NCBI GenBank assembly: GCA_040285825.1 | Contig: JAUPSS010000006.1 | Coordinates: 868,001 to 932,000 of the forward strand | Length of the DNA: 64,000 bases | Source: Eukaryota sp. TZLM1-RC | Lineage: Eukaryota; Protista; Metamonada: BaSk clade | Direction of reading: 5' to 3' | Shown: in pieces, positions 3,402 to 41,384 of the stretch | Position numbering within the stretch: position 1 is the stretch's first letter | Layout: every line of letters starts with the position of its first letter | Notes under the pieces: generated by a model | Seen by the model: the letters and a program-made list of their open reading frames with translations, nothing else | What the model was told of the DNA's origin: nothing | Databases searched by the model: none | Translations under genes and position numbers: made by a program

Positions 3402-4465
3402 TGTCCACGAGAGAATGAACTGACTTTATGCGACGTTGGACACTTTTTCGTGAAGGCAAAGATTGACGGGAGACAGTACTTGATAAGTTGCAAGAGAGTG
3501 GGACTTTCGACGAAAGAAAAAGGAAGATCATTATCAACTATCAGTTGAGCAATAAAAGCAAAAACAGAATCGCTAATTGTATGATCAATAAAAGGCGGTA
3601 CAACACTTATGAAAGATGTGATTGCAGGAGTTCGTTGTAGGGAAGATTTTCGTTCATTCGGGTGAAGAATATCATTGTGATGATGCCGTAGGTTGGAAAA
3701 GTGGTAAAGATAAAGCTAATTTATTTTCTATTCATATTATAAAAGCCTAAGGGCGCCAACAGTGCTTCTTCCCCTTTTTCAAAATTGATTGGCTTATATG
3801 AATATGAACCAAACTATAAACAAATAACTAAATAACTACAAATAATCTATATAAACTGAGAATTAGCCACACTTCCTAATTTGAGTACTGCTTCTTCGCC
3901 TCTTGCAAGGCGTAGAGTTATTGGAGGTACTTTAACGTTGACTAGTAGTACATTTTCCAATTTTCTTGTTATTCTTTCTGAACAACTTATAAGCTTCTGA
4001 ATGTTTAACTGAATGGAGACTCTTTTCCGTTGTTTTAACGCCAAACCATTGAACAGTACAGAAACTACCTGAGTCAGAATAAGAATTGAGAGGATTTTCT
4101 CTATAAAATGTTTCTCAGCATCGCCTGCTGCGACTGCCTTAAGAAAATAAATACCCAGAGGATACTCGGCGTTATAGATTTTGCAATCTTTCTTAGCAGC
4201 CTTTAATTTGGTGCCAGTAATAAAATTCTTCAATAATGAAGTAGAGTTGGAAGGATGGTCCATCACTTAAAAAGGTCCGTTCCTTGATCTATGCAATTTA
4301 TTATTTTGTTTGGTTTTACGAAGGACATAATCAATATTAGATACTATGAAACACGAATTAGTACTATCTACTGAAGTCGGAGTATTTATTGCATGATGAC
4401 GCTCAGCTTCTTCCCTTTTTTGTCGTAGACGATTTTTTTCAATTTAATATTCGAATATTGGAATC
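3402..4465 (-). mobile_element. Ty3/Gypsy LTR retrotransposon 3' remnant: integrase C-terminus, chromodomain, PPT and probable 3' LTR (about 3402-3761)
   Basis: Minus strand: DYVLRKT...GPF, EKHFIEKIL...VQWFG chromodomain (frameshifted), purine tract GAAAAAGGGGAAGAAG then TGTTGGCG LTR start at 3761. The LTR end (..GGACA at 3402) is tentative. Confidence 0.8.
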
Positions 4466-4846
4466 CAATTAGATCTGGAGTTAATTTTGACCCCAATTTG
4501 GATCAAATGAATGAAGACCAAAAATCTCTGTTCTTTTGTCGAGCAGTGGAGGCTTGACCCGTGTTATGTTGACCAGGAGCGAGGTGGGAAGCACATGAAC
4601 TCTGAAGAGTGGAATGGGAGACACTCACACACATCTGAAGTACTCCTGACAATTAAAATTTTATAAAAAAAAGAGTCAGGAAGTTCGCATCTCAAAGAGG
4701 TCTGACATAATCTGGACATATACTTTCAAAATATGTTTCATTGTATTATAGTGTTCAGTTATTATATTTTCGTCCTTCCTCTACATGTAACCGTTTAACT
4801 TAAAACCTGGCTGAACCGCGATCATTGCTTCTATTCTTTTTGGTTG

Positions 4847-7440
4847 ATGCCTGAATCAGTTTCTGATTCTAATGGAGTCAAAAGAAAGAACGATAGTCAA
4901 CAAGATGCTCAAGACGTCCTTTCCACCTCTCCTCCTCAACCTATTCTGTCTTCATTTTTGGACAAAAAAATTCTGATCAAGAATTTTTAGACAATCACGA
5001 TGAAAACAAAGTTTGTTCAAAAACAAAGCCACGCTCTTACAGATGCTCAAAGTGTCGACAACAGGGACATAATGCTCGAACATGCCCCAATGTTGGAAAA
5101 AATGATGTGGCAAATTCTGAAACAAAATGTAAAAGAAAATTTACTAGAAGGAAAGTCTAAGGTAGAACCCATAAATGATGCTCCACAAGTTGTTACAAAA
5201 CCAGTTTGCAACCGATTAAAGCACAAAACTTGCAACACTTGTGGTATTTCTTTTAGAAAAAATGCAAAAGGAAAAACTTCTGACCACTGCTTGAAATGGC
5301 GCATAGTTGATAACTACCATCCTCCCATAAAAATACCTCAAGAAATTCATCCGACCAAATGCAATGAATTTGCTTTCGTTTTTCAAAGATTTTTGGATCA
5401 ATTATGTAAAGGAAAGTATGCTATCATTTATATTTGGGACTTTTTTGGTTCTTTTTGTCTCCTTTTGAACAAAATTTCGTAAATAAATCCGAAGATTTAA
5501 CTAGTGTAGCACCGAGAAATCAGCCATCCGAGAAATTAAGTAAAATTTTTGAAGACAAATGCTTTGACAACAAGAGGTCCAAGGCTTTGTCAGCTTTAAG
5601 TCCTGGAGTTAAAGCACCCAACAGTGAAAGCACAATAGATAAACCAAAAATACTTCATCCTTATGAAGACCCTATAATGGATCAAAATTTTTACGGCACA
5701 TACTGGGAAAATTATCCATTGATGTCATCAGAAGTTTTTTCGGTTATCAAAAAGAGACCACGTGGTAAGTCTGCCGGACTTTCTGGTATTACCATTGATC
5801 ATGTCAAAGCCGCGATTATTTCTTCAGAAGATTGCCTTGGTTTATTGACCAAATTTTTCAACCAAATATTATCTGGTCAACGCAAATACCCAGAAGAATT
5901 AAGAAGTTCTCGTTTGACTGCACTTGTCAAAAATTCAAAAATGGATGTTCGTCCTATTGCAGTCTCTGAGAGCTTATACTATATTTTTTCTGCATGTTGT
6001 TTAAGCAGGTTTAACGAGAAAGCAAAACAAATATTATTACCCTTTCAATATGGTATAAATACTACAGATGGAGTCTCTTCAGCGATATTTGCTACTGATG
6101 AATTATTTCGCCAAAATGAATCCATTGTTTGTATGTCATTGGATTTCAGTAATGCATTCAATTCGCTCAATCGTCGCAGTATCCATGGTGCTTTACTGCA
6201 ATATTTGCCGAAATTACTGCCGTATTTTCAATCAACATGTAGCACATGTTCTAATTTACATTTCGGTAACAACATTTTGAGTTCATCAAATGGCGTAAAG
6301 CAAGGAAATCCGTTAGGACCTCTTTTGTTTTGTTTGGTCATTCATACTATTTTATTGCAAATTCAAGAGATGTTTCCTTCGCTAAAAACGATTGCATATG
6401 TGGATGATGTTGTTCTTATTGATGATTTAAATATTGTGAAAGAAGCAACTGTATGTTTTAAAGAATTATTTACCAAAATTGGTCTCCAACTTAATTTACG
6501 TGAATGTGTTTTGTTATCGAATTCTCCAGTTTTCACAATAAATGATCGTATTGAAATTCAAGTCAAATTATATTCAATTGATGCTATTCGTCATTTGGGT
6601 TCGTTTTTAGGAAATAATGATGAAATTACCAAAAAATTGTTTGAAAAGTTGAACTCAATTTCTGACAAAATTGACCGAATGATGACTTTAGATATACAGA
6701 CACATACTCATTTTACCATTATAACACTGTGTTTTAGTTCCAATCTTAATCATATATTTCGATCTACAAATACTCTTGTCACAAGGCCTTTGGCTCAGAA
6801 GTTGGATGAATTACGTGTCAAGGTGCTGTCACAATTACTGGGATGTAAATTGTTCCAAATTCCAGACCATGCTTACCTTAGTCCACATTATAGCGGTTTA
6901 GGGTGGACGAAGGCTTCTATTCTTACCTCGTGTGCTTTTGTTGGTGGATGCAAAAATGCAATCTTTGAGTTTTCCAAAATATTTGCAGATTGGGAAGATT
7001 TATTGATGACAACGCAAAGTTCGACTGTTTTTGCATTAAATGATGAAATTTCCAGAATTGATGTAGAAAAATGGGGTCGACGTTTTCCCCAATCATTCAA
7101 TGGCAATATTCCAGAAGAGAAATTTTAATTGAAAATACACTCTTCGAACATTACAGAAACGATTTACTGAAATGTACGAAAATGATCTTTATAATTATAT
7201 ATGCAGTTCGGCTGTTTAAAATCAAGATCTTCACTCATTGTTACCATTGTACCACGAAGATTTGGATTGTGTGCCACTAATGAAGCATTTGTAACAAAAA
7301 TGAGATTACAATTGAATATCAGAAGAAATATGTATTTGTGAGAACTCACCTCAACTAGAATTTCGCCATGTTCTGAATGTTTCTAAATTGATAACTTATC
7401 GTTCCTCATTGCATGATGCTGTTGAAGACACTGTTTTTAA
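4847..7440 (+). mobile_element. CRE-like non-LTR retrotransposon family C, degraded (zinc knuckle + RT), 5' part
   Basis: CSKCRQQGHNARTC knuckle at about 5044-5086; RT ORF 5434-7128 with RPIAV, LDFSNAFNS, VKQGNPLGP, YVDD; ends in HDAVEDTVF where a hAT element interrupts it. Start approximate. Confidence 0.9.
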
Positions 7441-8834: not shown

Positions 8835-9118
8835 GTTTTCAATATGGCACGAACTGCAAGAATTTCGTGTATCAAAGAGCCCCTGCTGAAGGAAACACTT
8901 TCTCTGAATAATTTTGGTCCTGATGATAGAGGTGATGTATACTGTGATTGGATTGAAAATTCTGAATCTATTGTTGACTTTGTCTCATGTAATGTTGCAA
9001 ATGATACTTTGGTTCACAGAAGAAAACTGAATCCTGTTACTGCTCTTGATTTTAAAGCAAAAGAGAAACAAAAAAATATGATAAAGATATTGAAGAGGCT
9101 AATGCCGATAGAAATACA
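8835..9118 (+). mobile_element. RLE endonuclease part of CRE-like family C (continuation after the hAT insertion)
   Basis: KEPLL...RGDVYCDW...IVDFVSCNV...KAKEKQK: PD-(D/E)xK-type RLE motifs homologous to the other families in the window. Confidence 0.85.
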
Positions 9119-9176
9119 ATTGCGCAAGATCAATAAGTACAATACTTCACACATAGATATTTATAATCCTGCGATA

Positions 9177-10007
9177 ATGACTCGATCTGCAGCTGATTAC
9201 TTGATGCACAGCACTATCCGTCTTGAATGCTCTTCTTGCAATGGGAACAGTGTCACTGGTACTGGTTTCTTCTATCGATTTGATGTTTCTGGAGATGAGT
9301 TCATACCCGTCATCATCACCAATGAACACGTTATTGCAGGATGTAGCTCATACTCATTCGTTTTTACTTTAGCAAACGACAAGAATGAACCGGTTATAGG
9401 GTCGCACTACCCCATTACCTTGTCCAGCCAAGACTCCCTATCCTGGACTAAACACCCTGATGATAATATTGATTTGGCCCTGATGCCCGTCAAGCCACTG
9501 GTAAGCTTTGCCGAGTCACAAGGTGTCAAGCTATTTTACTCTCCTTTGAATCAAAATTGCATTCCCACACATGAGCAACTGACGAAACTGTCTGGGATTG
9601 AGAATATCATCATGATTGGGTACCCCAATGGAATTTGGGATGGAGCCAATAATATGCCAATCATTAGACGTGGAATCACCGCTACAAGTCCGAAGCTAGA
9701 TTACGAAAAACAACCTATTTTTCTCATCGATTGTGCTTGTATTCCTGGATCAAGTGGAAGTCCTGTCCTAATATTTGACCAAGGTCCGTACTCATCAAAT
9801 GGAAGTTTGATTTTTGGTTCGCGCCTTTTCTTTCTCGGTGTTCTATTCGCCAGTCCGCAGATGGTTGCACAGGGACAGGTGAAATCCGTCAATGTTGTTT
9901 TGGCGAAAAAGTTTGTCTCATATACCGATATTCCATCCAATTTGGGAGTAGTGGTCAAAGCTCATCTAATTGAAAAGTTCCGGACACTACTATTGAATGG
10001 ATGTTAA
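9177..10007 (+). CDS. Trypsin-like (S1, Trypsin_2-type) serine protease of bacterial type, 276 aa
   Basis: GTGFF, IITNEHV (His), HPDDNIDLAL (Asp), IGYPNG, PIIRRG, LIDCACIPGSSGSPV (Ser); intact and intronless; start placed at MTRSAADYL (ATG 9177) because the upstream part of ORF 8844-10007 is retrotransposon sequence. Confidence 0.9.
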   Translation: MTRSAADYLMHSTIRLECSSCNGNSVTGTGFFYRFDVSGDEFIPVIITNEHVIAGCSSYSFVFTLANDKNEPVIGSHYPITLSSQDSLSWTKHPDDNIDLALMPVKPLVSFAESQGVKLFYSPLNQNCIPTHEQLTKLSGIENIIMIGYPNGIWDGANNMPIIRRGITATSPKLDYEKQPIFLIDCACIPGSSGSPVLIFDQGPYSSNGSLIFGSRLFFLGVLFASPQMVAQGQVKSVNVVLAKKFVSYTDIPSNLGVVVKAHLIEKFRTLLLNGC

Positions 10008-14803: not shown

Positions 14804-15415
14804 GCAAGGGCCCCGACCGCTGGATATTTAATATACTGATTGAAATGAGCTATGCAGTTGAATTCGATCATAAATTCAGCTCAAAAATCACAACATTTCT
14901 ACTCCATGACAAACAATCTTCTTAGCGGGGAGTTCACTCTTCTTATTGGGGCGGTGATTTCCTTTCTGAGAGGCAAGGCTCTTCTCAGCGGGAAGTTCAC
15001 TCTCCTGAGGAGGATCACTCTCCGTAGATGGAGGATTACTCTCCTTAGCAAGAAGATTACTCTTAATGTCCTGGCCGACTGAGCTATTAATTAATGATGC
15101 TGTATGGTTAGACATGTACAGATTAGAGATAAAAGATATTTATTTAAATTTCACTGGCCCTTTTTTTCCAAGGCCATCACTAGTGAAGTCTATTCTAGAG
15201 TAATTGTTCACAGTACAACAAAACAAGAAAAAACGATTCACTCAATGTTGGAAAACCGACCAATTGATCACATATCTAGGTCAGCTGATAATACAGCTTG
15301 CCCTTATAACATTCAAACCAACAATCTAGTTGGACAATCTATGTTGGGATTCAAACACTGGTTCAAATGTTTCTATTCAGTGAAGAAAATCTGAGTTGAA
15401 TTCAAATCGATATTT

Positions 15416-15845
15416 ATGCTTTCATATCCACAGTGTTCATTGTACAATTTGAAGGATGTGGTGAAGGAGGCTGTGGAGGACACTGTTTATGGCAATCTTA
15501 CTGCATTAGATCTAAACAATGACAACATTGGCAATGAAGGTAAAATAGAATTCCACTCTTTCTACATTAGATCTCTCCAACAACATCATTGGTCCCAAAG
15601 GTGCTAATGTACTTGCCGGAGCTTTGGAATCTAGTTCCACTCTTTCACAACTGATTCTTGGCGGTAACAAAATTGGATATGCAGGCGCTAGTGGACTCAC
15701 CAGAGCTTCGGTATCGCTTCACTCTTTCTTCCAACAACATTGCTGGTGCACTTACCCAAGGGATCAAATTCCACTCTTTCTCAATTGTATCTTTCCAAAA
15801 GCAACATTGGCAATTCAGCCAGATCCACACTTGAACAAATAGCAT
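15416..15845 (+). pseudogene. RI-like leucine-rich-repeat gene remnant
   Basis: NLKDVVKEAVEDTVYGNLTALDLNNDNIGNEG and ALESSSTLSQLILGGNKIGYAGA across frameshifts; homologous to 28204-28850, 43457-43850 and 61571-61960. Confidence 0.8.
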
Positions 15846-16022
15846 CTAATTGTCTTTTTCTAAAGATTTTTTGTTAATTAACACTTTCTTAAATTATTCT
15901 AGAAAGCAATCTTATTTTTTTTCTTTTTTATTTTTTGAACAAATAGCATCTAATCGTCTTTTTCTAAAGATTTTTTGTTAATTAACACTTTCTTAAATTA
16001 TTCTAGAAAGCAATCTTATTTT
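15831..16022 (+). repeat. Direct repeat of about 87 bp with a T-rich spacer
   Basis: 'ttgaacaaatagcatctaat...agaaagcaatcttatttt' at about 15831-15917 and 15935-16022. Confidence 0.9.
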
Positions 16023-17546
16023 GCACACCATTAAATTTTGGGAATTAGCCTGTGGTAAATGAATTTGCCACAAACTAATGAGTAGTATGAATTGTAGTAT
16101 GGGAACTATTTTCACAATTGAATTAGAATTTCTAACATATTGTATTAAATATACTAAATTATCAATTCCCTTGTTGGTCATTGTTTTTATTGCATTTTAC
16201 CTTACTATCATGCTGCCTATTTGTTGGTACTTTTCTTTTTCATTTTAAACATCTTTTTTAACAGCAGATGTTGGAGATTATACAGGTGTTCTCCGACAGT
16301 TATGTGCTGGTTTAAAATGATGCCTTTTGAACCCACATCAGGTTCAAAAAGATTGAGGTCTTTTTGGAATTAATTATTTGAAGTTGAACAAACTAAAGAT
16401 CGGTATGCTTTGAGTCGAGTCGTTCAGGAGTGTTTAAGTAATGTGCATTTGGGACTTATCTCGTTGTTTCAATGCTGTCCTTCACGTTTGTGTTGTAATA
16501 TGCTTAAACTTTGTGCAATTCCCGAAGAATTGGTTACTGAATCTTTGATTTGTTTTGTATAAGCAGAGTTTTTTGGTGATTTTGAAACAGATTATGACAC
16601 ATCAAGTCTTGACATATTTTTCCTTGGAACAAAATCTGAAGTTGTTTTGCTTGTTCTGTCACATGAATGGTGGTATTCCTTGCTCACTAGGTTCCATCAG
16701 TGATCATCTTCTCTAGATATCAGAAATACCACAGTTGTTCTCATAGCTGCTAATGATGCTTTAATTAGTACTACATTGCTTCTTTGACAATTTGTATTTG
16801 AAGAGGTATCAACTGAGGAAGCTAGTCACTGCATGTCGATGAGGGTTGCTCTGAGAAAAAGTTCCTTTAATTGATTCCAGAAGTTGTTGAATACATTGAG
16901 TACCGTCTTTCTTTTGGTCACTCATGTCGAGGTATTTTGAATTTCTCTACTTGATTTCACCTATTATTGGAACAAAATGATGTTTAATATTGATTTGAAA
17001 TTAGGAATAAAGTTTCTTTGGATTTTTTAAGGGTTCAATCTGACAGTTAAGCATTTTCAACACAATGTACATTTTTAAAATAATATTTAGTGAGTGCTGT
17101 CAAATATGAGAACAATTAAACTTACATTCATAATCATTACAGGATTATTAGAAGTGTTGTGAACAAAAATGTTCAAAGAAGATTAACAATTGAGGTGTCT
17201 CAGTGTATTGGGACCAAGTATTTGGGAGAATAAGATACTGAGCAGACACCTTATGTAACCTCTTCAATTACGTATAACCTTGAAGCTGTCGTCCAGATTC
17301 TTATCGATTTGAATTTGAGGTTGAAAAAATGTACTAAAGTAAATTGTGTATTCTTGTTATTTTGTTTTGGCTTTTTTCACTAGTTATCTATTCAAATGTA
17401 ATTTTATAAAGATTGAGTAATATTGAGGTGATAGTGACTGAGACATATAAACGAATGATAATAAGAAGTCGGAAATGATTCATTTATTGTGCTATACAAA
17501 AGAGAGTTGATGGAGAAACAAAAAAATAATTGATTAACATTAAACA

Positions 17547-20500
17547 CTAAGCAATGAGATCATTCTCAACTTGGATCACAACTTTAATTACTACACCATC
17601 AGTACAATAATACTGATGTACTTGGTTAGATGAATAAACAGTGTAGCGATGTAGAGATTTTCTTTTCTCTCCTTTTTCATTTTCTATTTCATTTTCTTTT
17701 TTTTCTTTATGACACTTCATAGCAGCCTCAGGCAAGTCTTTATGTAACATTTTGTTCTTGTGCTCATCGATAGAGAAATGTTTTTGCAATCTACGCAAAA
17801 ACTTTTTCAACATTTCCATATTCTTGAAGTGATCTCGACCAACGAGCTGATCTCTAAGACTCACAGCGCTATTCTCACTAGTTTTATCCCGCCTATTCAC
17901 AATATGATTACTGTGTAAAGATGGATTACACAGAGATGGTAGCTGGTCTATAAGATATTCCAAATCACCCGCAAGATTATAAAACTCTTTGATTTTGAGC
18001 TTAAGATGAAAACTGTTCAACATCTTGATGAATAAAGATAAAAAATTCACGAATGACTTAAGATCAGCTTCCGACATGCTAGATGGTATTGATTTGATGT
18101 CCAAAGAATCATCCATAAATTTACGAAATTCTTTAGGAAGTGGAAAGTGGAATGCAGAAGAAATACAAGACAATACATCCTCATTGAATTTTAGTAATGT
18201 CGTAATTAACACAGAATCAGTCTGTTTAGAATCGTTAATCAGCTTTTTCAGATACGAGCTAACAAATGGAGACGCTAAAGGATCTGACAGAAATGGTAAT
18301 ACTGATTGCTTCATTAAATCAATATCATTGGATGAAGATTGGTCTTGGTCATTTTTGATTAAAAGATGTAGTTCTGAGAAACCATCTGGAACACTCCAAA
18401 AATGGGTTTTCTCTAAAAAATCTACAAACTGGTGAAGTGAAACGTGGAAATAGCGAATATCAATAACGGAAGTCGTATATAGTACATCACTTTCGGTTTC
18501 CCTTAGCTGAGTTAATAATTGTTCCATTGTTTTGGAAAAATCTTCCTGGATGGTGAATGAAATATAAGTGGGTTTGTCATCATTATCTACATCAATACTT
18601 AAGTCAAAACAACTTTTTCCGCCAAATGATTCACTACTAACACAGTCATTAAAGAAAGACACCATATGAGGCAAACCATGGCACTGAAGGACAACCTTGC
18701 TGAGCTTTTCATAGAACTCTGCTTTATATTTTTCAAGATAAGTTTCAACAGACTCAGGAACATCTCTCCAATCTGGAACTATCAACTCTCTATCTGTTGT
18801 GTCGATCTTGAATATTTGAGCAACAACTTTCCAATAGTTGCCCATTGAAGGGTGCGATAGTGCTGAACGAATACGTTTGGTGAAGGAGTTGTGACTGTAA
18901 CCCAAAACTGGGTACTTGAACACTGAAACTTTATCCAAAATCTTATGCAGAGTATCAAATTCAAGTTGTTTTTTGCTCAAGATAGAGATATCAACACGTT
19001 CTGTTGGAAAATCAGTGCAGATATTCTTGTCAACATTAATTCTATCCATTTGAGCTAACTTCAACACATCTTGGTCAACATTAAACCATGAATTAACGGT
19101 AGAGCAAAGCACTTCACTGGAAATATTCTCCTTACAAAGTAGAATCAAGTAATAACAAGCAAGGGGAATGTCATCTCGATGTTGGAAATAAAAGAATTTA
19201 GGTTCTTTCATTAATTGGTACTGGTCTCTATTAGATTTAGAATCCTGTTGGAACGACCAAATCTTGATAGATTTATGTTTCTTCACAAACTCAAAAGTAG
19301 TATCATCTAAAGTACCAAGCCCTACAGTAAACCAATTATTGCCGAGAACTTCTGGTATAAGAGGTTCTTCTCTTTCGGCATATGTCAGAATAGACGAGGA
19401 GTACACCGAACCATGTAAATGATATACAAAGCATTTGGGGTTACGAAACTGCAAGCTATCAGAAGTTTCCTCATTGGCAAACATTTGAAGATGTGGTCCA
19501 AAGTCTTTTTCATGTTGTTGTTGAGCTTGCTGTGAAAATACAATCTGTACAGGAGGATTAACCTTAAAGTTCTCTGGATCAATCTTTGACCCCAAATGTA
19601 TCAATATTTCAATAATAGAATCATAATTTGTTGTGGCAATGTTGACAGATTCATGACTCTGCAAACGAGCTAAATGCAACACTAAGCTAGCGTATTGATT
19701 ATTCCGGAAAAACTTGATTATATTATATTCATACATGGCTTCCTCATCAGGAGATTTACATCCAAATTCCAATATAGCAACGTTTACCAAGACTCCAAAA
19801 GCATCACCAACACAACTTTTGAGAGCTTGGGTATAAGAAGATTGTTTCTTTTTAGCTAAATTTCCTGCTAATGGGTCTCTTCTAAGGCAACGGTCGTACT
19901 GAGTTAATTCAGGAAGACTTTCAGATACTTGGCGGCCGACAGATTCTCCAAGGGCATATTGAAGCATAACTGTCCAATTAAGACTATAAGGAACATTTGC
20001 AAAGAGAGGTTTGACGTTGGAATAATCATCAAGTATGTCCTGGAAATACTTTGGGGAAATTTCAATGTGCAAAAGAGATTTAATGTTGACCTTAGCAACC
20101 CACAGCAGCAACAACGCCAATGCTGGTACGGAAATGATACACTGGTCCTTGGACCAATGGTTTCCATTGGCAAAAGGAAAAATCCAATCTAGCTTAGATA
20201 AATCCTCTTCAATGGAGTTGTTCTTCAATTTATCACTAAGACGATTGACTTCGTCCGTGAATCGTTGAGCTTCATTATCAGAAGTAAAGTGATTTGGTTT
20301 GACATTGTAAATGAAACTTGTTGGAAACCGTAGAAAAGCAGAAACAAGGATGATAATGGAACACTTGTAGGAGAGATAACCACTAGCTTGATCATAAGTT
20401 AAAGAAAAATCTTGGGTATTGTTACGAAGAAGGTCACGGGTAAGCGGTGAAGATAAACATCCAAGCAAGGATGAACAGACATCCAACCAAAGATGAAGAA

Positions 20501-21047
20501 GTCTGAAACAAGAACCCTCGGAATTGGGTTGCTTTTGGTCTTGGAGAAGTTTAAAAACGTTCAATGAGAGACCATTGCCGAAGACAACAGTTGGGTCGGA
20601 AATCTGGGGAAGGTTGTCAGGAAACAAGAAGCGACAATCGAATAGCTTACAGGGAGTTAACTGCGGGAAGAATAATCTGTTGCATTGTTTGATAAGATGG
20701 GTCTCATCATAATCATTTGAACTTACACAAAGATGATGAAGTGAAGAATCATGGTCAATCATTTTAACAACATATTGGTCCAGCGTTGTTTGGTCAGGTG
20801 TGAGGAGGATAGTCGCTGAAGCAACGATTTCGCATTGATATAGTTTAGCTTTTTCCACTTCAGAGCTCGGAAGATCAGTGTGTTCTATAGCATGAATAAC
20901 GATTTTGCGACCATCTTCAAAATGAAAAATGTTCTCTGTTCCTTGAGTTTGTTGACCTGTCTTGAAGTAAGACCTGCGCAAAGAACTACAAAGACGTTCA
21001 ACTCTGTCTCGGAATTGTTGACAAGGTTGAACATTTTCGTTTGTCAT
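17547..21047 (-). CDS. 1166-aa protein with a SIR2-like (SIR2_2-type, putative NADase) domain
   Basis: Intact intronless ORF; ordered motifs VVFGNGLS (GNGLS at 20565-20579), NWTVML, IATTNYDSIIE (TTNYD at 19620-19634), VYHLHGS (HLHGS at 19407-19421), WFTVGLGTLDD. Confidence 0.8.
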   Translation of the reverse strand: MTNENVQPCQQFRDRVERLCSSLRRSYFKTGQQTQGTENIFHFEDGRKIVIHAIEHTDLPSSEVEKAKLYQCEIVASATILLTPDQTTLDQYVVKMIDHDSSLHHLCVSSNDYDETHLIKQCNRLFFPQLTPCKLFDCRFLFPDNLPQISDPTVVFGNGLSLNVFKLLQDQKQPNSEGSCFRLLHLWLDVCSSLLGCLSSPLTRDLLRNNTQDFSLTYDQASGYLSYKCSIIILVSAFLRFPTSFIYNVKPNHFTSDNEAQRFTDEVNRLSDKLKNNSIEEDLSKLDWIFPFANGNHWSKDQCIISVPALALLLLWVAKVNIKSLLHIEISPKYFQDILDDYSNVKPLFANVPYSLNWTVMLQYALGESVGRQVSESLPELTQYDRCLRRDPLAGNLAKKKQSSYTQALKSCVGDAFGVLVNVAILEFGCKSPDEEAMYEYNIIKFFRNNQYASLVLHLARLQSHESVNIATTNYDSIIEILIHLGSKIDPENFKVNPPVQIVFSQQAQQQHEKDFGPHLQMFANEETSDSLQFRNPKCFVYHLHGSVYSSSILTYAEREEPLIPEVLGNNWFTVGLGTLDDTTFEFVKKHKSIKIWSFQQDSKSNRDQYQLMKEPKFFYFQHRDDIPLACYYLILLCKENISSEVLCSTVNSWFNVDQDVLKLAQMDRINVDKNICTDFPTERVDISILSKKQLEFDTLHKILDKVSVFKYPVLGYSHNSFTKRIRSALSHPSMGNYWKVVAQIFKIDTTDRELIVPDWRDVPESVETYLEKYKAEFYEKLSKVVLQCHGLPHMVSFFNDCVSSESFGGKSCFDLSIDVDNDDKPTYISFTIQEDFSKTMEQLLTQLRETESDVLYTTSVIDIRYFHVSLHQFVDFLEKTHFWSVPDGFSELHLLIKNDQDQSSSNDIDLMKQSVLPFLSDPLASPFVSSYLKKLINDSKQTDSVLITTLLKFNEDVLSCISSAFHFPLPKEFRKFMDDSLDIKSIPSSMSEADLKSFVNFLSLFIKMLNSFHLKLKIKEFYNLAGDLEYLIDQLPSLCNPSLHSNHIVNRRDKTSENSAVSLRDQLVGRDHFKNMEMLKKFLRRLQKHFSIDEHKNKMLHKDLPEAAMKCHKEKKENEIENEKGEKRKSLHRYTVYSSNQVHQYYCTDGVVIKVVIQVENDLIA

Positions 21048-24668: not shown

Positions 24669-27600
24669 TTTTTCTCACTCACTTTCAACGTCCTCCTTCT
24701 TCTCAACTTGACGTCCTATTGTCGGTTCGATTGAATTCCTCCAGTCTCCATGTCAGACACTCTCAGTGATACTGACTGGACTGCAAAAAGTACCGAACGT
24801 GATGTTGACAAACCAACCTCCTCAACCACCAATCGTTCTCATTCTCCCCACCTGTCACTCCATGCTGGAAAATCATTGGAAAAAAATTTAAATGAAAATT
24901 TTTCTAAACCACGCCGCAAATGTTGTAAATGTCGAAAAACCGGACATAACATTGCAACTTGTCCGCTTATTCAAAAGGAAAAACTTAATGCTCGTGCTGC
25001 AACTGCAGATTTAAATATTTCGTTATCACACAATCCTGAAAATGAATTTTTAAGCGAGATGCCCGATAACATTTCTAACAAAGAAGATTATAAAGATGAG
25101 AAAAAATGTGTTTTTTGTCGAAAGCTTGTTGCTGTCAATGATTCTGGTCGACCCTTACTTTTTTGTGATTCTTGTGTTGCTGCTGATCAACTACGTTCTC
25201 CCATTCGTGTTCCTGCTCAGCTTAGTCCGTTGGCTTCGATACCTTTTGCTGTTGTTCTTCGTGCTTTTACTGAAAATCTGCGTGGATTATGGGATGTTAC
25301 GCCTATTTGGAAATTTTTTCTGAAAAAAGATAAAAAACTTTTATCGAAAAAATCAAATTTTAAAAAAAATGTTTTTTCGAAAGAAAAATTAGTGAGAAAA
25401 TTAGCTTTAAAAGGACGTTTTGGATCTGCAAAACAATGTTTATTCTCTTCTGATTTAGCTGAATGTAATGAAAGCACATTGTTCCAATTGAATCATCTTC
25501 ATCCAGAAGAAAATTTTCATTGTACTAAACCAGATTCAGTTGATTATTGGCTGCAAAATCCTGTCAATGCTTCTGAGGTATTGAAACTGATTCAGCAAAT
25601 GCCTACTGGAAAAGCTCCTGGGCCATCTTTGTTGAATTTTGACATGATCAAATCAGCTGTTGGACAGTGTCCTGAAATTGCTGATGATCTTGTTCTTTTT
25701 TTCAACAATCTTCTTACGTTAAAAATTAAAGTCCCTTTTGAGATGACCAGTGCTCGCTTAATTGCTCTCAAAAAAAGTCAATCCAAAATCCGTCCAATTG
25801 CAATTGGAGAATCGATTTCAAGAATTCTTGCGTCTCTTGTTTTCAATAGAATTGGGAAAAAAGCCAAGGAATTTTTCAGTCCATTTCAATTTGGAATCAA
25901 GACAATTGATGGTGCTTCTTCTGCTGCTCTTTCGTCGGATGTGTTTTTTAATTCTAGTGATTCTAATTACATCTTCAATTTAGATTTTAAGAATGCTTTC
26001 AATTCTGTATCTCGTTCTTCCATTTTACCTTTGCTGCGAAAGCATTTTTCTGAAGTTGAGCCTTTTTTCTATTCATTTTATGGAAAATCATCCACATTGG
26101 TCTATGAAAACTTTGACCTGCTTTCGTCTTCACGTTAAACAAGGTGATCCACTTGGTCCTTTTTTCTTTTGTCTGGCAATTCATCCATTAATGTGCGAAT
26201 TGAAAGAAAAATTCCCAGAAATAGATATTGTAGCATATATGGATGACATTTCTGTAATTGCTCCTATTAGAATTCTGAAACAAATAGCAACTTTTATTCA
26301 ACAGCGTTATGAAGATATTGGTCTCTCATTGAATATCTCCAAATGTTTGATTATTGGCCATGAACCAATTGATTTTTTCATTAATGATGTAAATGTCCCC
26401 TTTATCAATTATGATCAGTCTGGTTTTTGTTTTTTGGGTTGTTATCTCGGAAATATTGAAGAAGTCAAAGGCCAACTTTTGACTCTGTTGACTCAATTTG
26501 GAAATGAATTAGAATCAATAGAAAATTTAAATATTGAGAAACATTTGAAATTCTTTTTCCTAAAAATCTGTTATTCAGGAAAATTTACTCATATTTTGAG
26601 ATCTACATCACCATCAATTTCTTTGGAGTTTTGTCGCATTTTTAATGAACAAAGGACCAATTTTTTAGCAAAATTATTGGAAATTGATGCATCTCAGTTA
26701 CGAAGCCACATTTTTTGTGGTACAAATTTTGGTGGTGTTGATTTTCATAAATCAAGCTACCTTTGTAAAGCTGCCTTTATTGGAGGTGGAAAGAATTTTA
26801 TTTATGAATTTGTGAATTGTTTTCCTGAAAAAGTTCATCTCATTGAAAATTGTGACAGCTCTTATCTTATTTCTTTGCAACAGGAAATTGAAACTTTTTC
26901 ACCCAATATTTGGGCTAAATGTTTCCCCTCTGATATTGTGGAACTTCCTTCAAGAAGCTTGCTCTCCTTACCACTGACTTTTGCAAAATTGCAGAAAAAA
27001 ATCTTGAAAGTTTTAGAAAACTTGGATTATATTGTACGTCTTAGCTTGGCTAAGGAAAAAAATCCCGTTTTTGCAAACTTTTTGATTGATGTTGAAGAGA
27101 GTTGTTCAAGTTGCCTAATCTCCCAAATTCCCAACATTTATGGCCTTCTACTTAATGATCACCAATGGAAAATCTGCAATGAGAATGAGATGTTTTCAAT
27201 GGCCTTGTTCATTACCAAATGATTTAATTTGTCGCTGCAAGAGTGTTGTTACGCTTTCCCATATTTTAAACTGTAAGTATTTTATAACTTATCGCTCAAT
27301 TGTTCATGACTCAGTTCGTGATCAATTATATGCCATGTGCAAAAGTTTCAATATAGAGGCATTTATTGAGCCACTAGTACGTAAGCTGTCTTCAGATCAA
27401 ACTGATGATTCCTTTGGTAAAAGAAGGGCACATTTAGTAGCTCCAGGGATCGATGGTGTTCTCAATGTTGTAGATGTTGTCTCAGTTGATGTTTGCAAAA
27501 ATTCTGCTGCTCGTTTAGTGTATTCCGCTGATTCGCCGTTATCTAACGCCGAAAAAAAGAAGATAAAAAAATATGAAGAACCTTTGGCACAGTTAGGTAG

Positions 27601-27930
27601 AGTGGAACATGTGAAATATCAGTTTATGCCGTTTGCAATTTCTCTTTTTGGCAATATTGGACCTTCAGGGTTGCACTTTTTGGAAAATTTTAAAAAGGTG
27701 CTACTGAATAGGTCTGGTAAAACAATGAACTCCACTTTCTGGTTAAATAGAATTGTTTTTTGCATTTTCAAGTCTATTCCTACAATGATTTCAAAGGCAC
27801 TTTTAGCTATCGGTGTAGAATATGAACGTAATGCTGTGAGTAGGTTCAGTAATAGTGACGCTTGTTTGGAGGATATTGAATATTAGATGGTTATTTTTAT
27901 CTCAATAAATATTCCAGTTTTTTAAAAAAA
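24669..27930 (+). mobile_element. Full-length CRE-like RLE non-LTR retrotransposon (family A); single ORF 24750-27886 broken by two frameshifts
   Basis: CCKCRKTGHNIATC knuckle, CVFC..CDSC, RT (RPIAIGE, LDFKNAFNS, QGDPLGP, YMDD), CRC..HILNC, RSIVHD, RLE; AATAAA and poly(A); 11-bp TSD AATTCAAATTT (24658-24668 / 27931-27941). Confidence 0.95.
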
Positions 27931-35042: not shown

Positions 35043-37244
35043 TTAATGAAAAGCTTTCTCAGTTTGACCTACATATTCATGAAAAATATCAATCAAGAAG
35101 CTTTTCCCTGGATACTGAATCCACCATGGAAAACAAGATAATTCAACTAAATATCCATTCTTAATTAGTTCAACAGATTCAATTAAACCTTGATTAATCA
35201 GTACTGCAGGAAATAGGGATGAGCTTGATAGACTATCTTTATCAGATTCAATCATTTGAATAAATCTCAAAGAAGGGAAGTTTTGCTCAATGATATTGCT
35301 GGGAACTTTTTCATGAATAACTAACTCCTCCAAATTTGGTAATTGCATTTCACAACTGATCGACGGACAGCTCATTGTGACTCTAATTAGGGAATGAGGC
35401 AAAGGTATTTGTCCATCTAGTATACCTCGTGACTTAAGCACGACCAATTCTTTTAATGATGTAAGATAGCTAAAATCAGTCAGCATATAGACATCATGAA
35501 GCACTAACTTCACTAGTGAAGTGGGCAATTGTTCCATATTGTATGGATAATGAAGTACTAAACATTTGAGATTTGATAAATGCGCCAAGTGTAGCGAGTA
35601 CCTTTTCGGACGCATAAGCATTGTCTTGAGCTTTATAACCTCAACATTTGGGAAAAAGGAAAACAGTTGTGGGTCATAATCAACTTCACAGTAAACATCA
35701 AGCTGTTTAATTCCAGCATTAATTTCTTTGGAACATTGATAGTCGGTAGATAATTTCAATTGTAAATCACTGATATTTTCATTTAAATTCAAATCTCGAG
35801 GATCTTTTAAAAAGATCTTGTTTTGAATTGGATGAGCCCTGAACACCTCTTGAGCAAAGTGAGCTACTCTTTTACTTATACCACACTTGGTGTAAAATCT
35901 TGCCTTAATATATGGATGGTTGCCAAAAAGCTGTGGTAAATAACACAAATATTCCCAATAAACAAGCTTAATTAAACCACGAAACATTCTGCCTAAAGGT
36001 TGTTGTGGATGACGAAAACTGCCAAGTATTTCAGATCCAAATACTTTGACAGGTTGTGGTCGATCAATCAAATCAAATATACCTAATTGACCTTTGTCAT
36101 TGCTTCCCCAAGCCAAAACAGTGTTCTTGTTGTAGGCAAAAAGGAAGTTATAACCTACTGAAACTCTTTCTACATAAGTCAGTGTTTCAAAGCATATTGG
36201 TTCATCACTATCATTATAAAGATCACTTATTCTACTCAACTGACCCCAAACAAAAACTTTACCACAATTATCAATGGCAGCATAAACACCTTTACAACCA
36301 TTAATAAAAAGAATATTAGTCAACCCTGGAACTTTGGTGGGTGGGTCATCAAAGGTAACATCATCACTATCCTTAAAGAACTTCCAAACATCACCATTGA
36401 CATCAATAACAAATAAATAATTATCGTAAAGAAAGAAAGAACCCTTGGATGGTTCTTTCGTAGATATATGCTGGGGGACTCTTATCTTCAATAGTCCAAA
36501 AAATTGTGCAAAAACGTGATAGAAATCACCATTTAAATCAACTGCAACAAAAGAATGACGGTCAACGGACATTGAAACAATATTATTTAGTCCTTCAATT
36601 AATTCAACACATCCACTATTTCCACATTTAACAATTTTACCTTCTTGTGTCAAAGCAAAAGATAAACGATGATCACAATAAACTTCCTTAATTTTATAAG
36701 GAATGTTTGTTTTAGTGATTGGTAGTTTGTTACTACTTGATTCAATGATTTGGTTAGCTTTATTACCTCCCCAACCATACAACTTACCGTCAGAAGAGAT
36801 GGCAAGGGAGTGAATACTACCAGCTGAAATGTCTTGAATATCATTTAAAGGTAATTTGATTGGTGATTTGATTGATTCAGGTCCATCATAGAGAACTTGG
36901 CCAAAATGATTCTTCCCCCAACCATAAACCTCACCAGAATGGGTGACAAGAAGTGTGTGACCATCACTGCTACAAATGGACTTTACTCCAACCGACCGTT
37001 CTGGTCGATCGGAATTTGGGTCACCCAACATATCTTGTTGAACAGAATCGTTTTCCATGGATGTAAGGCTGATGGTTCTTGAAAAGGGATAGTTGGAATC
37101 TACGGAAGAACTCACGGGGATTGACGAGGGGATTTGAGGAGAGAATGAATTAGAAGACGAATGTGATGTATGGTAAAAATGGCGCTCCGGTAAAAAAGAA
37201 GACATATCATGGCGGCCAGATGCAGGAGCAAAGTACTTGGACAT
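35043..37244 (-). CDS. RCC1-repeat (beta-propeller) plus C-terminal LRR protein, 733 aa
   Basis: HTLLVTHSGEVYGWGKNHFGQ, ISAGSIHSLAISSDGKLYGWG, AWGSNDKGQLG; C-terminal QLPTSLVKLVL / LTSLKELVV repeats; intact ORF. Confidence 0.9.
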   Translation of the reverse strand: MSKYFAPASGRHDMSSFLPERHFYHTSHSSSNSFSPQIPSSIPVSSSVDSNYPFSRTISLTSMENDSVQQDMLGDPNSDRPERSVGVKSICSSDGHTLLVTHSGEVYGWGKNHFGQVLYDGPESIKSPIKLPLNDIQDISAGSIHSLAISSDGKLYGWGGNKANQIIESSSNKLPITKTNIPYKIKEVYCDHRLSFALTQEGKIVKCGNSGCVELIEGLNNIVSMSVDRHSFVAVDLNGDFYHVFAQFFGLLKIRVPQHISTKEPSKGSFFLYDNYLFVIDVNGDVWKFFKDSDDVTFDDPPTKVPGLTNILFINGCKGVYAAIDNCGKVFVWGQLSRISDLYNDSDEPICFETLTYVERVSVGYNFLFAYNKNTVLAWGSNDKGQLGIFDLIDRPQPVKVFGSEILGSFRHPQQPLGRMFRGLIKLVYWEYLCYLPQLFGNHPYIKARFYTKCGISKRVAHFAQEVFRAHPIQNKIFLKDPRDLNLNENISDLQLKLSTDYQCSKEINAGIKQLDVYCEVDYDPQLFSFFPNVEVIKLKTMLMRPKRYSLHLAHLSNLKCLVLHYPYNMEQLPTSLVKLVLHDVYMLTDFSYLTSLKELVVLKSRGILDGQIPLPHSLIRVTMSCPSISCEMQLPNLEELVIHEKVPSNIIEQNFPSLRFIQMIESDKDSLSSSSLFPAVLINQGLIESVELIKNGYLVELSCFPWWIQYPGKSFLIDIFHEYVGQTEKAFH

Positions 37245-38250: not shown

Positions 38251-39068
38251 GTTTATATCATGTTTGCATTTAGTCGTAATCTCGCTACTTTACTAGCACA
38301 TAGACCAAACTTTGATCTGTTGAGTGATTTACCCATTTGGTTACTGCATTATTTATTCATCACAAATACTGGAAAGACGATTTCCCTCAAATTCAGCGCA
38401 TGGGCACATTTGTACAATACACTATAAGTAAATACTATAATCACAAATATTATCCAAGGCTAACAATATGAAGAAAGGTGAATCGTGTGTATAAAAATAT
38501 TATTGTTAGTACAGTTTACAATCAACATCTACCCTCCCTGCTGTGATGGTGAGTTTGAGAAACACACTCTAAACCACATATTTTATATACAATCGACATA
38601 AGAAAAGATTTTCTATTTTGTGATAATCAAACCACACTGAAGCTGCATAATATGCATATATTAATTCATGTTCTGCAGAAAAACTAATAAACTGCTATCA
38701 ATGACTAATCAAATTCTAGCTGCTAGCTATTGCCAATCTATGATTGCAAAGAGATTAGAACTCTCATGTTCAAAGGGAACAATGTGCTTCTTCTGCTTCT
38801 AGCGATGTGTCCTGCTACATAAAGCAAACTTTCTGAATGCAATAGTGCTGAATGTATTCATGTATATTGATATAACAGAAGATTTATTGACGTACTGATT
38901 CTATATAAGCATAAACAGACGAACTACGGACTAGTCTAAGTGAAGAGCGGACGAACTACAGACCAGACTAGGTCCACTTGATCCTAGTCCGAAGTTTAAA
39001 TTTTCTCCCATTTGTAGACTTCGACACTGTCATTTATGAGCAAAAAACCCCAATCTGTTGTCAATTCA

Positions 39069-41384
39069 ATGTCCAGCCATTCTACTCCCTCATTTCACGG
39101 CGATGTTACGCCTTCTCCTTTACCAACGTGCTGCCGTGAAGATACATCGCCTTCGTCGTCTGATTCATACTCCCCCCGTATCCCCTCTTCAATCCCCGTT
39201 AACTGTTTCATGGATTCCCATCATGCCTTTTCAAGAACGATGGATCTCTCCTCTGACAAGCAAGATTCTTCTCACCCTTCCCTCATTAGATCTGTCAATG
39301 ACGACCTGAAATCAAATTTGCCTCTTATTGCTCTTCCTTCATCGATGGACATGACTTCAAACCATTGTATTCTTCCCAAGTCTTCCATATCAAGTGCATG
39401 TGAAGATGTGTCGGCCGATCCAAGTGCCCATCGATCGGAAAGCTTAGTTGGGGTTAAGTCAATTTCCTGTGGTGATTTGCACTCCCTTCTTCTCACATAT
39501 TCTGGTGAGTTTTATGGTTGGGGGAATAATGTTGGTAGTCAAGTTCTCTATGATGGACCTGAATCAATCAAATCACCAATCAAAACAGCTTTTAATGATA
39601 TTCAAGCCATTTCAGCTGGAGTGAATCACTCTTTTGCCCTCTCTTCTGACGGTAAGTTGTATGGTTGGGGTATTAATAGATTAAACCAAATCAATAGATC
39701 AAGTAGTCACAAACTACCAATCACTGAAATAAACATTCCTTATGAAATTAAGGAAGTTTATGGTTCTGCTGTTTCCTTTGCTTTAACCCAGGAAGGTCAA
39801 GTTGTTAAATGGGGAGATGATAAATCATTTGAATTAATCAAAGGCCTAAATAATATTGTTTCAATGTCCGTTTATTGTGTTGATTTTGTCGCAGTTGATT
39901 TAAATGGTGATTTCTTCTTCTCTGACCGTCATCAACTTTGCAGGATACCAGTCACTCAGCGTATATCTACGAAAGAACCATCCCAGGGTTCTTTTTTGCT
40001 TGTTGGCAATTATTTATTTGTTATTGATGTCAATGGTGATGTTTGGATGTTCAGCAAGAATAATTTATTTGGTCCTTTCTGCGACAAACCCACCAAAGTT
40101 CCAGGGTTGACTAATATTGTTTTCATCAATGGTTGTAATGGTATTTATGCTGCCATTGATAATAGTGGTAAAGTTTCTGTATGGGGTCAGTTGAGTAGAA
40201 TAAGTGATCTTCACGAAGATAGTGATGAACCAAAATGTATCGAAGCTTTCACTAATATAGAAGGAATTTCAGTGGGTCAAAACTTCCTTTTTGCCTACAA
40301 CAAAAACACTGTTTGGGCTTGGGGAAGGAACTATAAAGGTCAATTAGGTACAGGTGATTTGATTGATCGACCACATCCTGTCAAAGTATTTGGATCTGAA
40401 ATACTTGGCAGTTTTCGTCATCCAAGACAACCTTTAGGCAGAGTGTTTAGTGGTCCAGCCAAATTAATTTATTTTGAATATTTACAATATTTGAAAAACT
40501 TGTTTGGAAATTGTCGTTATCCAAAAGCCAGATTCTATACCAAATGTGGTATTAGCAAAAAGGTTGCCAAAATTTCCAAGAAAGTTATTAATCGTTTTGA
40601 ATTTTTAAAAGATACCGAAAATTTAAATTTAAATGAAAATATTTGTGAATTACAATTGCGATTATCTACTGGTTATCAATGTCCCAAAGTTATTAATAGT
40701 AGAATTGAAAAACTTGAGATACACTATGATGAAGTTGATTATGATCCAGAGTTATTGACATTTTTCCCAAATGTAGAGGAGATTAAGCTCAGTACGTTGT
40801 TGGTATTCCGTTGGATTTCTTTAAACTTGGCGCATTTATCAAATCTCAAATGTTTAGAGCTTCATTATCCATTCAATATAGAACAATTACCTGCTTCACT
40901 AGTGAAGTTAGTGCTTACACGGGACGATATGGATGTTACAGATTTTAGCTATCTTGCATCATTAAAAGAGTTGGTGGTGATGTCTTATCGTCTTTCACCA
41001 AGTATATTAGAAGGACAAATACATTTACCTCAATCCATTGTTAGATTGGAAGTATTGTGTCAGACACCCAATATTTACATACAATTAAAGAGCTTGAAGG
41101 AATTGGTAATTATTGACAAAGTTCCCGCCAAAATCACTGAACAAAACTTTCCTTCTTTGAAATTTATTCAATTTATTAAATCAATTGAATTCAGTCTGTC
41201 AAGTTCTCCCCTATCTCCAAGACCATTTATTAATCAAGGTTTATTCAAATCTGTTAAACTAATCAAGAATGAATTTTTAGTTGAATTATCTTGTTTTCCA
41301 TGGTGGATTCAGTATCCAGCCAAAAGGTCTTTGTTTGATATTTTTCATGGTTATTTAGATGAAAGTTTAGAATCTTTTCAGTAA
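39069..41384 (+). CDS. RCC1-repeat plus C-terminal LRR protein, paralogue of 35043-37244
   Basis: Same architecture with long identical blocks (PVKVFGSEILGSFRHP, KARFYTKCGISK, VELSCFPWWIQYP). Start placed at 39069 because its context (ccccaatc.gtt...ttcaATGTCC) matches the paralogue; an upstream in-frame ATG exists at 39036. Confidence 0.9.
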   Translation: MSSHSTPSFHGDVTPSPLPTCCREDTSPSSSDSYSPRIPSSIPVNCFMDSHHAFSRTMDLSSDKQDSSHPSLIRSVNDDLKSNLPLIALPSSMDMTSNHCILPKSSISSACEDVSADPSAHRSESLVGVKSISCGDLHSLLLTYSGEFYGWGNNVGSQVLYDGPESIKSPIKTAFNDIQAISAGVNHSFALSSDGKLYGWGINRLNQINRSSSHKLPITEINIPYEIKEVYGSAVSFALTQEGQVVKWGDDKSFELIKGLNNIVSMSVYCVDFVAVDLNGDFFFSDRHQLCRIPVTQRISTKEPSQGSFLLVGNYLFVIDVNGDVWMFSKNNLFGPFCDKPTKVPGLTNIVFINGCNGIYAAIDNSGKVSVWGQLSRISDLHEDSDEPKCIEAFTNIEGISVGQNFLFAYNKNTVWAWGRNYKGQLGTGDLIDRPHPVKVFGSEILGSFRHPRQPLGRVFSGPAKLIYFEYLQYLKNLFGNCRYPKARFYTKCGISKKVAKISKKVINRFEFLKDTENLNLNENICELQLRLSTGYQCPKVINSRIEKLEIHYDEVDYDPELLTFFPNVEEIKLSTLLVFRWISLNLAHLSNLKCLELHYPFNIEQLPASLVKLVLTRDDMDVTDFSYLASLKELVVMSYRLSPSILEGQIHLPQSIVRLEVLCQTPNIYIQLKSLKELVIIDKVPAKITEQNFPSLKFIQFIKSIEFSLSSSPLSPRPFINQGLFKSVKLIKNEFLVELSCFPWWIQYPAKRSLFDIFHGYLDESLESFQ

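Follow-up and report, generated by a model that had tools for sequence, protein, structure and literature searches.

A probable lineage-restricted and extremely divergent SIR2 protein of the defence type in the metamonad Skoliomonas litria

Here, we describe a gene on the reverse strand of a 64,000-nucleotide stretch of DNA (the window, to which positions below refer unless another locus is named) from Skoliomonas litria TZLM1-RC. We propose that its product, P0001, is probably a lineage-restricted and extremely divergent protein of the defence-type SIR2 group (SIR2_2, SIRim) that, judging from its sequence, would cleave nicotinamide adenine dinucleotide (NAD). TZLM1-RC is the type strain of this anaerobic, haloalkaliphilic soda-lake metamonad (PMC11603281). 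The gene consists of a single exon (17547-21047, reverse strand), an uninterrupted open reading frame (ORF) of 1166 codons followed by a terminal stop. That stop is the sole one in its frame, whereas the five remaining frames of this 3.5-kb span each contain 54-136 stops, and the GC content of the ORF is 0.366 against 0.355 for the window. The same protein is annotated as a gene product in assembly GCA_040285825.1, on the 1.52-Mb contig JAUPSS010000006.1.

The centre of the protein is a SIR2_2-like core (amino acids (aa) 150-625; 19173-20600, on the reverse strand as are all features of the gene given here) in which the motifs follow the order of a SIR2 domain. GNGLS at aa 157 lies in a predicted strand beta1 and Gly-rich loop, TVVFGNGLSLNVF (aa 153-165; 20553-20591). 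TTNYD (aa 472-476; 19620-19634) contains the putative catalytic Asn474, and HLHGS (aa 543-547; 19407-19421) the putative catalytic His545. GLGTLDD (aa 576-582; 19302-19322), with Gly576 and Asp581, is the counterpart of the family's GYSFxD. An initial annotation, made from the sequence alone, had described this ORF and its SIR2-like motifs in canonical order, and all four were recovered. It had also described the catalytic-type Asn and His as intact, and both are present and invariant in P0001 and its one paralog, P0002. As it had further stated, there is no sirtuin zinc ribbon: a pattern scan of the whole protein found no CxxC and no Walker A motif ([GA]xxxxGK[ST]), and the canonical sirtuin family (PF02146) gave no match at E values up to 1-5.

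Several lines of evidence point to the SIR2_2 family (PF13289) as the home of this core. SIR2_2 is the top match of full-length P0001 in Pfam and its only meaningful family match (E 3.4e-4, 21.2 bits), and P0002 matches it separately (E 8.4e-4, 19.9 bits), both paralogs over positions 3-62 only of the 141 in the model. When aa 440-625 of P0001 are excised, the match rises to 25.6 bits (E 1.5e-5), just over the Pfam gathering score of 24.5 bits. In the hidden Markov model (HMM) search that the initial annotation had proposed as a check, only the excised domain exceeds the gathering score, with full-length P0001 and P0002 below it. Several PADLOC SIR2 models match the same spot in both paralogs, and a language-model search with aa 140-640 returned neighbours that all (30/30) belong to bacterial SIR2_2 clusters, with a borderline score of 0.90.

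For comparison with the family itself, 120 bacterial loci were fetched by a degenerate DNA pattern for TTNYDxhhE, which makes them a motif-biased sample. Their ORFs fall into three groups: c0 (about 400-480 aa), c1 (including ThsA, with SIR2_2 and STALD domains), and c2 (about 500 aa). Ten representatives were verified by Pfam as SIR2_2 proteins (E 1e-7 to 1e-31). In hhalign, the catalytic half of the Skoliomonas core aligned to c0 (probability 95%, score 59.2), c1 (85%, 44.5), and c2 (93%, 54.7). Because the references had been picked through the TTNYD motif, motif-preserving shuffles were run (n=40); their maxima were 44.3, 46.6, and 46.2, so that the scores against c0 and c2 exceed the null. 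With TTNYD cut away, the part from HLHGS to GLGTxDD still aligned to the correct region of the template (z 4.3, 2.0, and 4.6 for c0, c1, and c2; 60 shuffles). The N-terminal strand TVxFGNGLSLNV (TVVFGNGLS in P0001) aligned with the beta1-G[AS]GxS loop of all three groups (z 2.9, 2.8, and 2.1). A low-confidence whole-core hhalign placement of the Gly loop at aa 282-299 (LDWIFPFANGNH) was rejected on two grounds: P0002 lacks a Gly in this stretch, and the invariant GNGLS strand, aligned by itself, matches the loop of the template.

When the two paralogs and 71 bacterial domains (73 sequences) were aligned without supervision by MAFFT, G157, G159, S161, TTNYD, E480, H545, G546, G576, and D581 fell in conserved or invariant columns, those of Asn474 and His545 being invariant across the 71 bacterial SIR2_2 domains. 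In the C-terminal G-[YL]-S-x-x-D motif, G576 and D581 stand in the conserved columns and the Ser is replaced by Gly578. The joint alignment (A4) takes half of its rows from c0, and its profile best matches the SIR2 subunit of SIR2-HerA structures; the PDB titles of several of the matched defence SIR2 structures name NADases. As read from these alignments, the motifs exceed chance, being invariant in a paralog of only 32% identity and lying on the conserved columns of the family. With several weak lines agreeing, the core of P0001 is probably a SIR2_2-type domain.

The two proteins stand nearly alone. Word-index protein searches with full-length P0001, the core alignment, and the catalytic half of the paralog found one relative only: P0002, a hypothetical protein of 694 aa encoded on another contig of this genome (JAUPSS010000002.1, locus L002, 10001-12085). 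It is 32% identical to P0001 over P0001 aa 154-605 with all four motifs invariant, and it retains the whole core including the extra segment described below, lacks the 150-aa N-terminus, and ends in an unrelated C-terminus of 215 aa. The neighbours of P0002 are ordinary genes (Phospholip_B, Metallophos, JAB, and RRM). An exhaustive HMMER search of 1.84 billion representative proteins with a two-sequence core profile returned P0001, P0002, and P0003 only, the last being a Calx-beta repeat protein in which seven weak repeats sum to a spurious match. No relative of the core or the C-terminus was found by locus search in JGI metagenome contigs, and none in bacterial or archaeal genomes (one genome for each of 185,579 species). 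The sole plasmid match, a tblastn match in Sulfitobacter (E 0.6), has no real ORF at its position and was taken as chance. Profile and sequence searches of the PDB with the core, catalytic half, and C-terminus gave nothing or a chance match to OTUB1 (E 0.65), and no other copy was detected in the window by tblastn with either protein. By these sequence searches the family is almost orphan and lineage-restricted, in keeping with the initial annotation's view of P0001 as an undescribed protein.

P0001 departs from the bacterial family between the Gly loop and TTNYD, a distance of 313 aa in P0001 and 299 aa in P0002 compared with 78-154 aa (median 123) in the 71 bacterial SIR2_2 domains; the distance from TTNYD to the His is also long, at 73 aa in P0001 against 34-66 aa in bacteria. 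Much of the difference lies in a helix-rich, lineage-specific segment (approximately aa 165-357; 19977-20555), of which about 172 residues fall in alignment columns occupied by the two Skoliomonas proteins only, in agreement with the insertion of about 200 aa reported in the initial annotation. This extra segment is 31-35% identical between the paralogs and the catalytic half 36-44%, and by this measure the segment is not junk, being conserved about like the catalytic half. It contains a conserved hydrophobic stretch, PALALLLLWV (aa 308-317), inside a 19-mer (aa 304-322; 20082-20138) with a Kyte-Doolittle mean of 2.09; other conserved hydrophobic 19-mers are at aa 229-247 (1.68) and aa 412-430 (1.65). 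These values are within the range of transmembrane helices, and the 19-mers may be such helices or, alternatively, buried helices of the core.

Structure prediction and phylogeny add to this picture. With the 73-sequence alignment, AlphaFold2 gave a predicted local distance difference test (pLDDT) score of 53 overall, with 65-85 at beta1 and the Gly loop, TTNYD, and the His, and below 50 across the extra segment. The best PDB match of this model by Foldseek is SIR2/HerA (E 0.17). As the alignment is dominated by bacterial SIR2_2 families, the model is a consistency check and not an independent line of evidence. A quick maximum-likelihood tree sets the paralogs on a long branch of their own (SH-aLRT, the Shimodaira-Hasegawa-like approximate likelihood ratio test, 99) that lies outside c0, c1, and c2, with path lengths to the paralogs of more than 5 changes per site, and the tree yields no donor or clade assignment for them.

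The regions on either side of the core are without detected relatives. The N-terminal region (aa 1-150; 20598-21047), missing from the paralog, had none in Pfam, in PADLOC, or by phmmer against the 120 bacterial SIR2 ORFs; the same phmmer comparison with the extra segment and the C-terminus also found nothing. The C-terminal region (aa 626-1166; 17550-19172) shows no similarity to the C-terminus of P0002 by BLAST and no relative by Pfam, NCBIfam, PADLOC, PDB, atlas, or metagenome search. It includes CHGLP at aa 789 (18669-18683), in which the initial annotation had seen a weak STAND-like motif without a Walker A. The motif is there and the Walker A is indeed missing, but the STAND link finds no support, as no Pfam, NCBIfam, or PADLOC model, be it NACHT, NB-ARC, or SAMD9-like, matches aa 606-1166. 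P0001 also has neither an AlbA_2 domain nor a P-loop. Nor was any defined sensor domain or relative found in the C-terminus, which leaves the annotation's idea of P0001 having its own sensor region a guess. A Pfam match to Spa1_C below the cut-off (E 0.006-0.03) lies in the Lys-rich tail and was taken as chance, as was a PADLOC match to Cas12i (E 0.006).

The annotation had also been reminded of AbiH by the GNG of the Gly loop. AbiH (PF14253) gave no match with the full protein or aa 154-445 at E values up to 5, an exclusion that is not strong given that HMMER filters drop weak matches. A GNG loop is, moreover, found in two verified SIR2_2 reference proteins (L099 and L100) and is therefore not diagnostic of AbiH. 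The protein at L099 (positions 3588-4955 of that locus) is a bacterial NUDIX-SIR2_2 fusion of 455 aa with the Gly loop GNGFN. FAM118/SIRanc proteins were matched neither in the exhaustive core-profile search nor in a PDB profile search that included FAM118B chains (E 10).

The surroundings of the gene are clearly eukaryotic and transposon-rich, with RCC1-repeat genes, a protein kinase, reverse-transcriptase ORFs, and a trypsin-like peptidase; no tRNA and no Rfam family was found in the window. Three intronless RCC1-repeat genes lie close together (45902-54802, 35043-37244, and 39036-41384), one of them encoding 2966 aa and ending in a PH domain. Two reverse-transcriptase ORFs (5434-7128 and 24750-27886) and a 387-aa Trypsin_2 peptidase ORF (8844-10007) are found among transposon debris. 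The 5' leader and start codon of P0001 (21039-21069, including ATG ACA AAC) have an inverted copy 6.1 kb away, at 14884-14914 (31 nt, 94%). Downstream of the copy, at 14906-16030, is a frame broken by stops in which RNI-type leucine-rich-repeat units remain (e.g. GNLTALDLNNDNIGNEG), with DNA repeats at 15488-15810. To judge from its sequence, this looks like a decayed leucine-rich-repeat gene that had a start in common with the P0001 gene and lies in convergent orientation to it.

How secure, then, is the assignment of P0001 to the defence-type SIR2 proteins? A number of results weigh against it, beginning with the fact that each single line of homology is weak. The full-length Pfam scores of both paralogs (21.2 and 19.9 bits) do not reach the gathering score of 24.5 bits, 4-10% of shuffled proteins attain the language-model score of 0.90, and the choice of references through TTNYDxhhE inflates the raw hhalign scores. 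Against c1, one of the three groups, hhalign stays within the null whether TTNYD is kept or cut. The two-sequence profile retrieves no SIR2 protein from the 1.84 billion representatives or the PDB, even at E 10, and AlphaFold2 of the core from the two paralogs only has a mean pLDDT of 30.6, which is unusable. Only 31 aa separate the His from the GxS motif, fewer than in every one of the bacterial sequences (43-80 aa), and the Lys of KxHG, invariant in 71/71 bacterial sequences, is a His in both paralogs (His543 in P0001; 19413-19415). Taken at their strongest, the missing HMMER-level match to any SIR2 protein, this unbiased prediction, a best Foldseek E value of 0.17 despite the use of a biased model, and the atypical spacing between motifs would mean that P0001 is not a SIR2 protein at all, being instead a mostly helical orphan whose short motifs (GxGxS, TTNYD, HxHGS, and GxGxxD) mimic SIR2_2 by chance or convergence. 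We consider this improbable. The four motifs are in the right order and each is on the right family column in three bacterial subfamilies, the scores beat both motif-preserving and motif-free shuffles in two of the three groups, and Pfam, PADLOC, and the language-model search converge on one family and no other. A recent transfer from bacteria, a contaminant, or a decaying or transposon-borne gene without host function is very improbable indeed: the gene does sit between retrotransposon, Mutator, and hAT debris, and its leader and start codon are duplicated, but its GC content matches a eukaryotic contig bearing RCC1, kinase, and PH-domain genes, its 3.5-kb frame is fully open, searches of metagenomes and of the genomes of 185,579 bacterial and archaeal species found no relative, and the paralogs form a separate long branch outside the three bacterial groups.

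The alternative that we take most seriously accepts the SIR2 fold and drops the immune NADase: P0001 would be a housekeeping or regulatory NAD-dependent enzyme (a deacylase or ADP-ribosyltransferase), or an NAD-binding pseudoenzyme or scaffold of SIR2_2 descent. Its flanks contain no sensor, nuclease, STAND, or other conflict-type domain by Pfam and PADLOC, and the change from Lys to His in KxHG together with the short His-GxS spacing could signal altered chemistry. Vertebrate FAM118 proteins of the same class, too, are reported to form filaments and to process NAD beyond simple depletion (PMC12700824). The catalytic Asn and His are nonetheless kept in both paralogs, and a gene known in only two copies with unrelated C-termini, one of them among transposon debris, is a better fit to a fast-evolving accessory gene than to a housekeeping one. 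We therefore regard this alternative as somewhat unlikely.

Returning to P0001 as a defence-type SIR2 protein, what might it do? The defence-type SIR2_2 or SIRim group includes ThsA, DSR2, the SIR2 of SIR2-HerA, the SIR2 of SPARSA, and FAM118, and of these ThsA, DSR2, SIR2-HerA, and FAM118 consume NAD+ through the catalytic Asn and His. By analogy with its family, we favour an NAD-consuming role for P0001. The core would bind NAD+ and cleave it using Asn474 and His545, either as an NADase or by ADP-ribosyl transfer, like its relatives in bacteria and vertebrates. Approximately 170-230 conserved residues enlarge the helical region that separates the Gly loop from TTNYD, and this extra segment, together with the N-terminal 150 aa and the C-terminal 540 aa, may hold the enzyme inactive or control its assembly until a trigger arrives. 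That P0001 is an immune effector is a more tentative proposal. It is only by analogy that a role in immunity or conflict is plausible, given the class of the domain, the modular architecture of the two copies, and a position amid transposon debris. In the paralogs a common core is joined to unrelated C-termini, a modular pattern, and a modular core with differing C-termini is also seen in defence SIR2 proteins.

A bolder version, speculative and rather unlikely as a whole, is that the two Skoliomonas proteins represent a sixth, metamonad-specific lineage of eukaryotic defence SIR2, so divergent that standard profiles miss it, in which the helical lid has grown into a conserved module of 170-230 residues with transmembrane-like hydrophobic helices (aa 304-322). 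This would yield a membrane-associated or newly gated NAD+-depleting immune effector with interchangeable C-termini as sensors.

These possibilities matter for what is known of immunity across eukaryotes. Few features tie eukaryotic immunity to bacterial anti-phage systems as clearly as defence-type SIR2 domains do, and we know of almost no described immunity in free-living metamonads. If active, P0001 would be an immune candidate in such an organism, and its extra segment and unrelated flanks would be a new gating of an NAD-consuming effector. SIRim proteins occur in 19% of eukaryotic genomes and in five clades, some with NACHT or TPR fusions, according to a preprint (10.1101/2024.09.18.613514). 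As full-length P0001 falls below the Pfam cut-off and has no relative but its paralog among the 1.84 billion representative proteins, surveys of that kind would likely miss such proteins, and the true spread of defence-type SIR2 in deep-branching protists may be underestimated.

Among known systems, the SIR2 subunit of SIR2-HerA (PDB 8w9l, 8wld, 8su9, and 8uae) is the best match of the joint-alignment profile noted above, but P0001 has no visible HerA partner or other sensor. It exceeds c0 by about 160 residues in the helical region, has a His for the Lys of KxHG, and is extended by 150 aa at the N-terminus and 540 aa at the C-terminus; the similarity is below HMMER detection. Thoeris ThsA (SIR2_2 with STALD/SLOG; PDB 6lhx and 8bto) has the SIR2_2 motif set and the catalytic Asn and His columns in common with P0001, which has no SLOG/STALD domain, and the group containing ThsA, c1, gave the weakest of the three profile comparisons. 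DSR2 (about 1000 aa, with a C-terminal sensor; PDB 8k98) resembles P0001 in overall plan: in each, a single chain of about 1000-1200 aa has a SIR2_2-type domain near its N-terminus and, after it, more than 500 aa that are not catalytic. The C-terminal region of P0001, however, has no sequence similarity to that of DSR2. The eukaryotic SIRim proteins, including FAM118B/SIRanc (PDB 9r0p), are like P0001 in having a eukaryotic defence-type SIR2 domain, sometimes fused to others. Human FAM118B and FAM118A have been characterised as filament-forming, NAD-processing sirtuins (PMC12700824). The comparison with FAM118B gives a VIA Z of 5.0-5.3, below the values for bacterial proteins, and a large conserved extra segment is not described for the five SIRim clades in the accessible portion of the preprint (10.1101/2024.09.18.613514). 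Thus, a eukaryotic SIR2 of the anti-phage type is not new in kind; what is new in P0001 is its extreme divergence, its large conserved extra module, its deep-branching free-living host, and its unrelated flanks.

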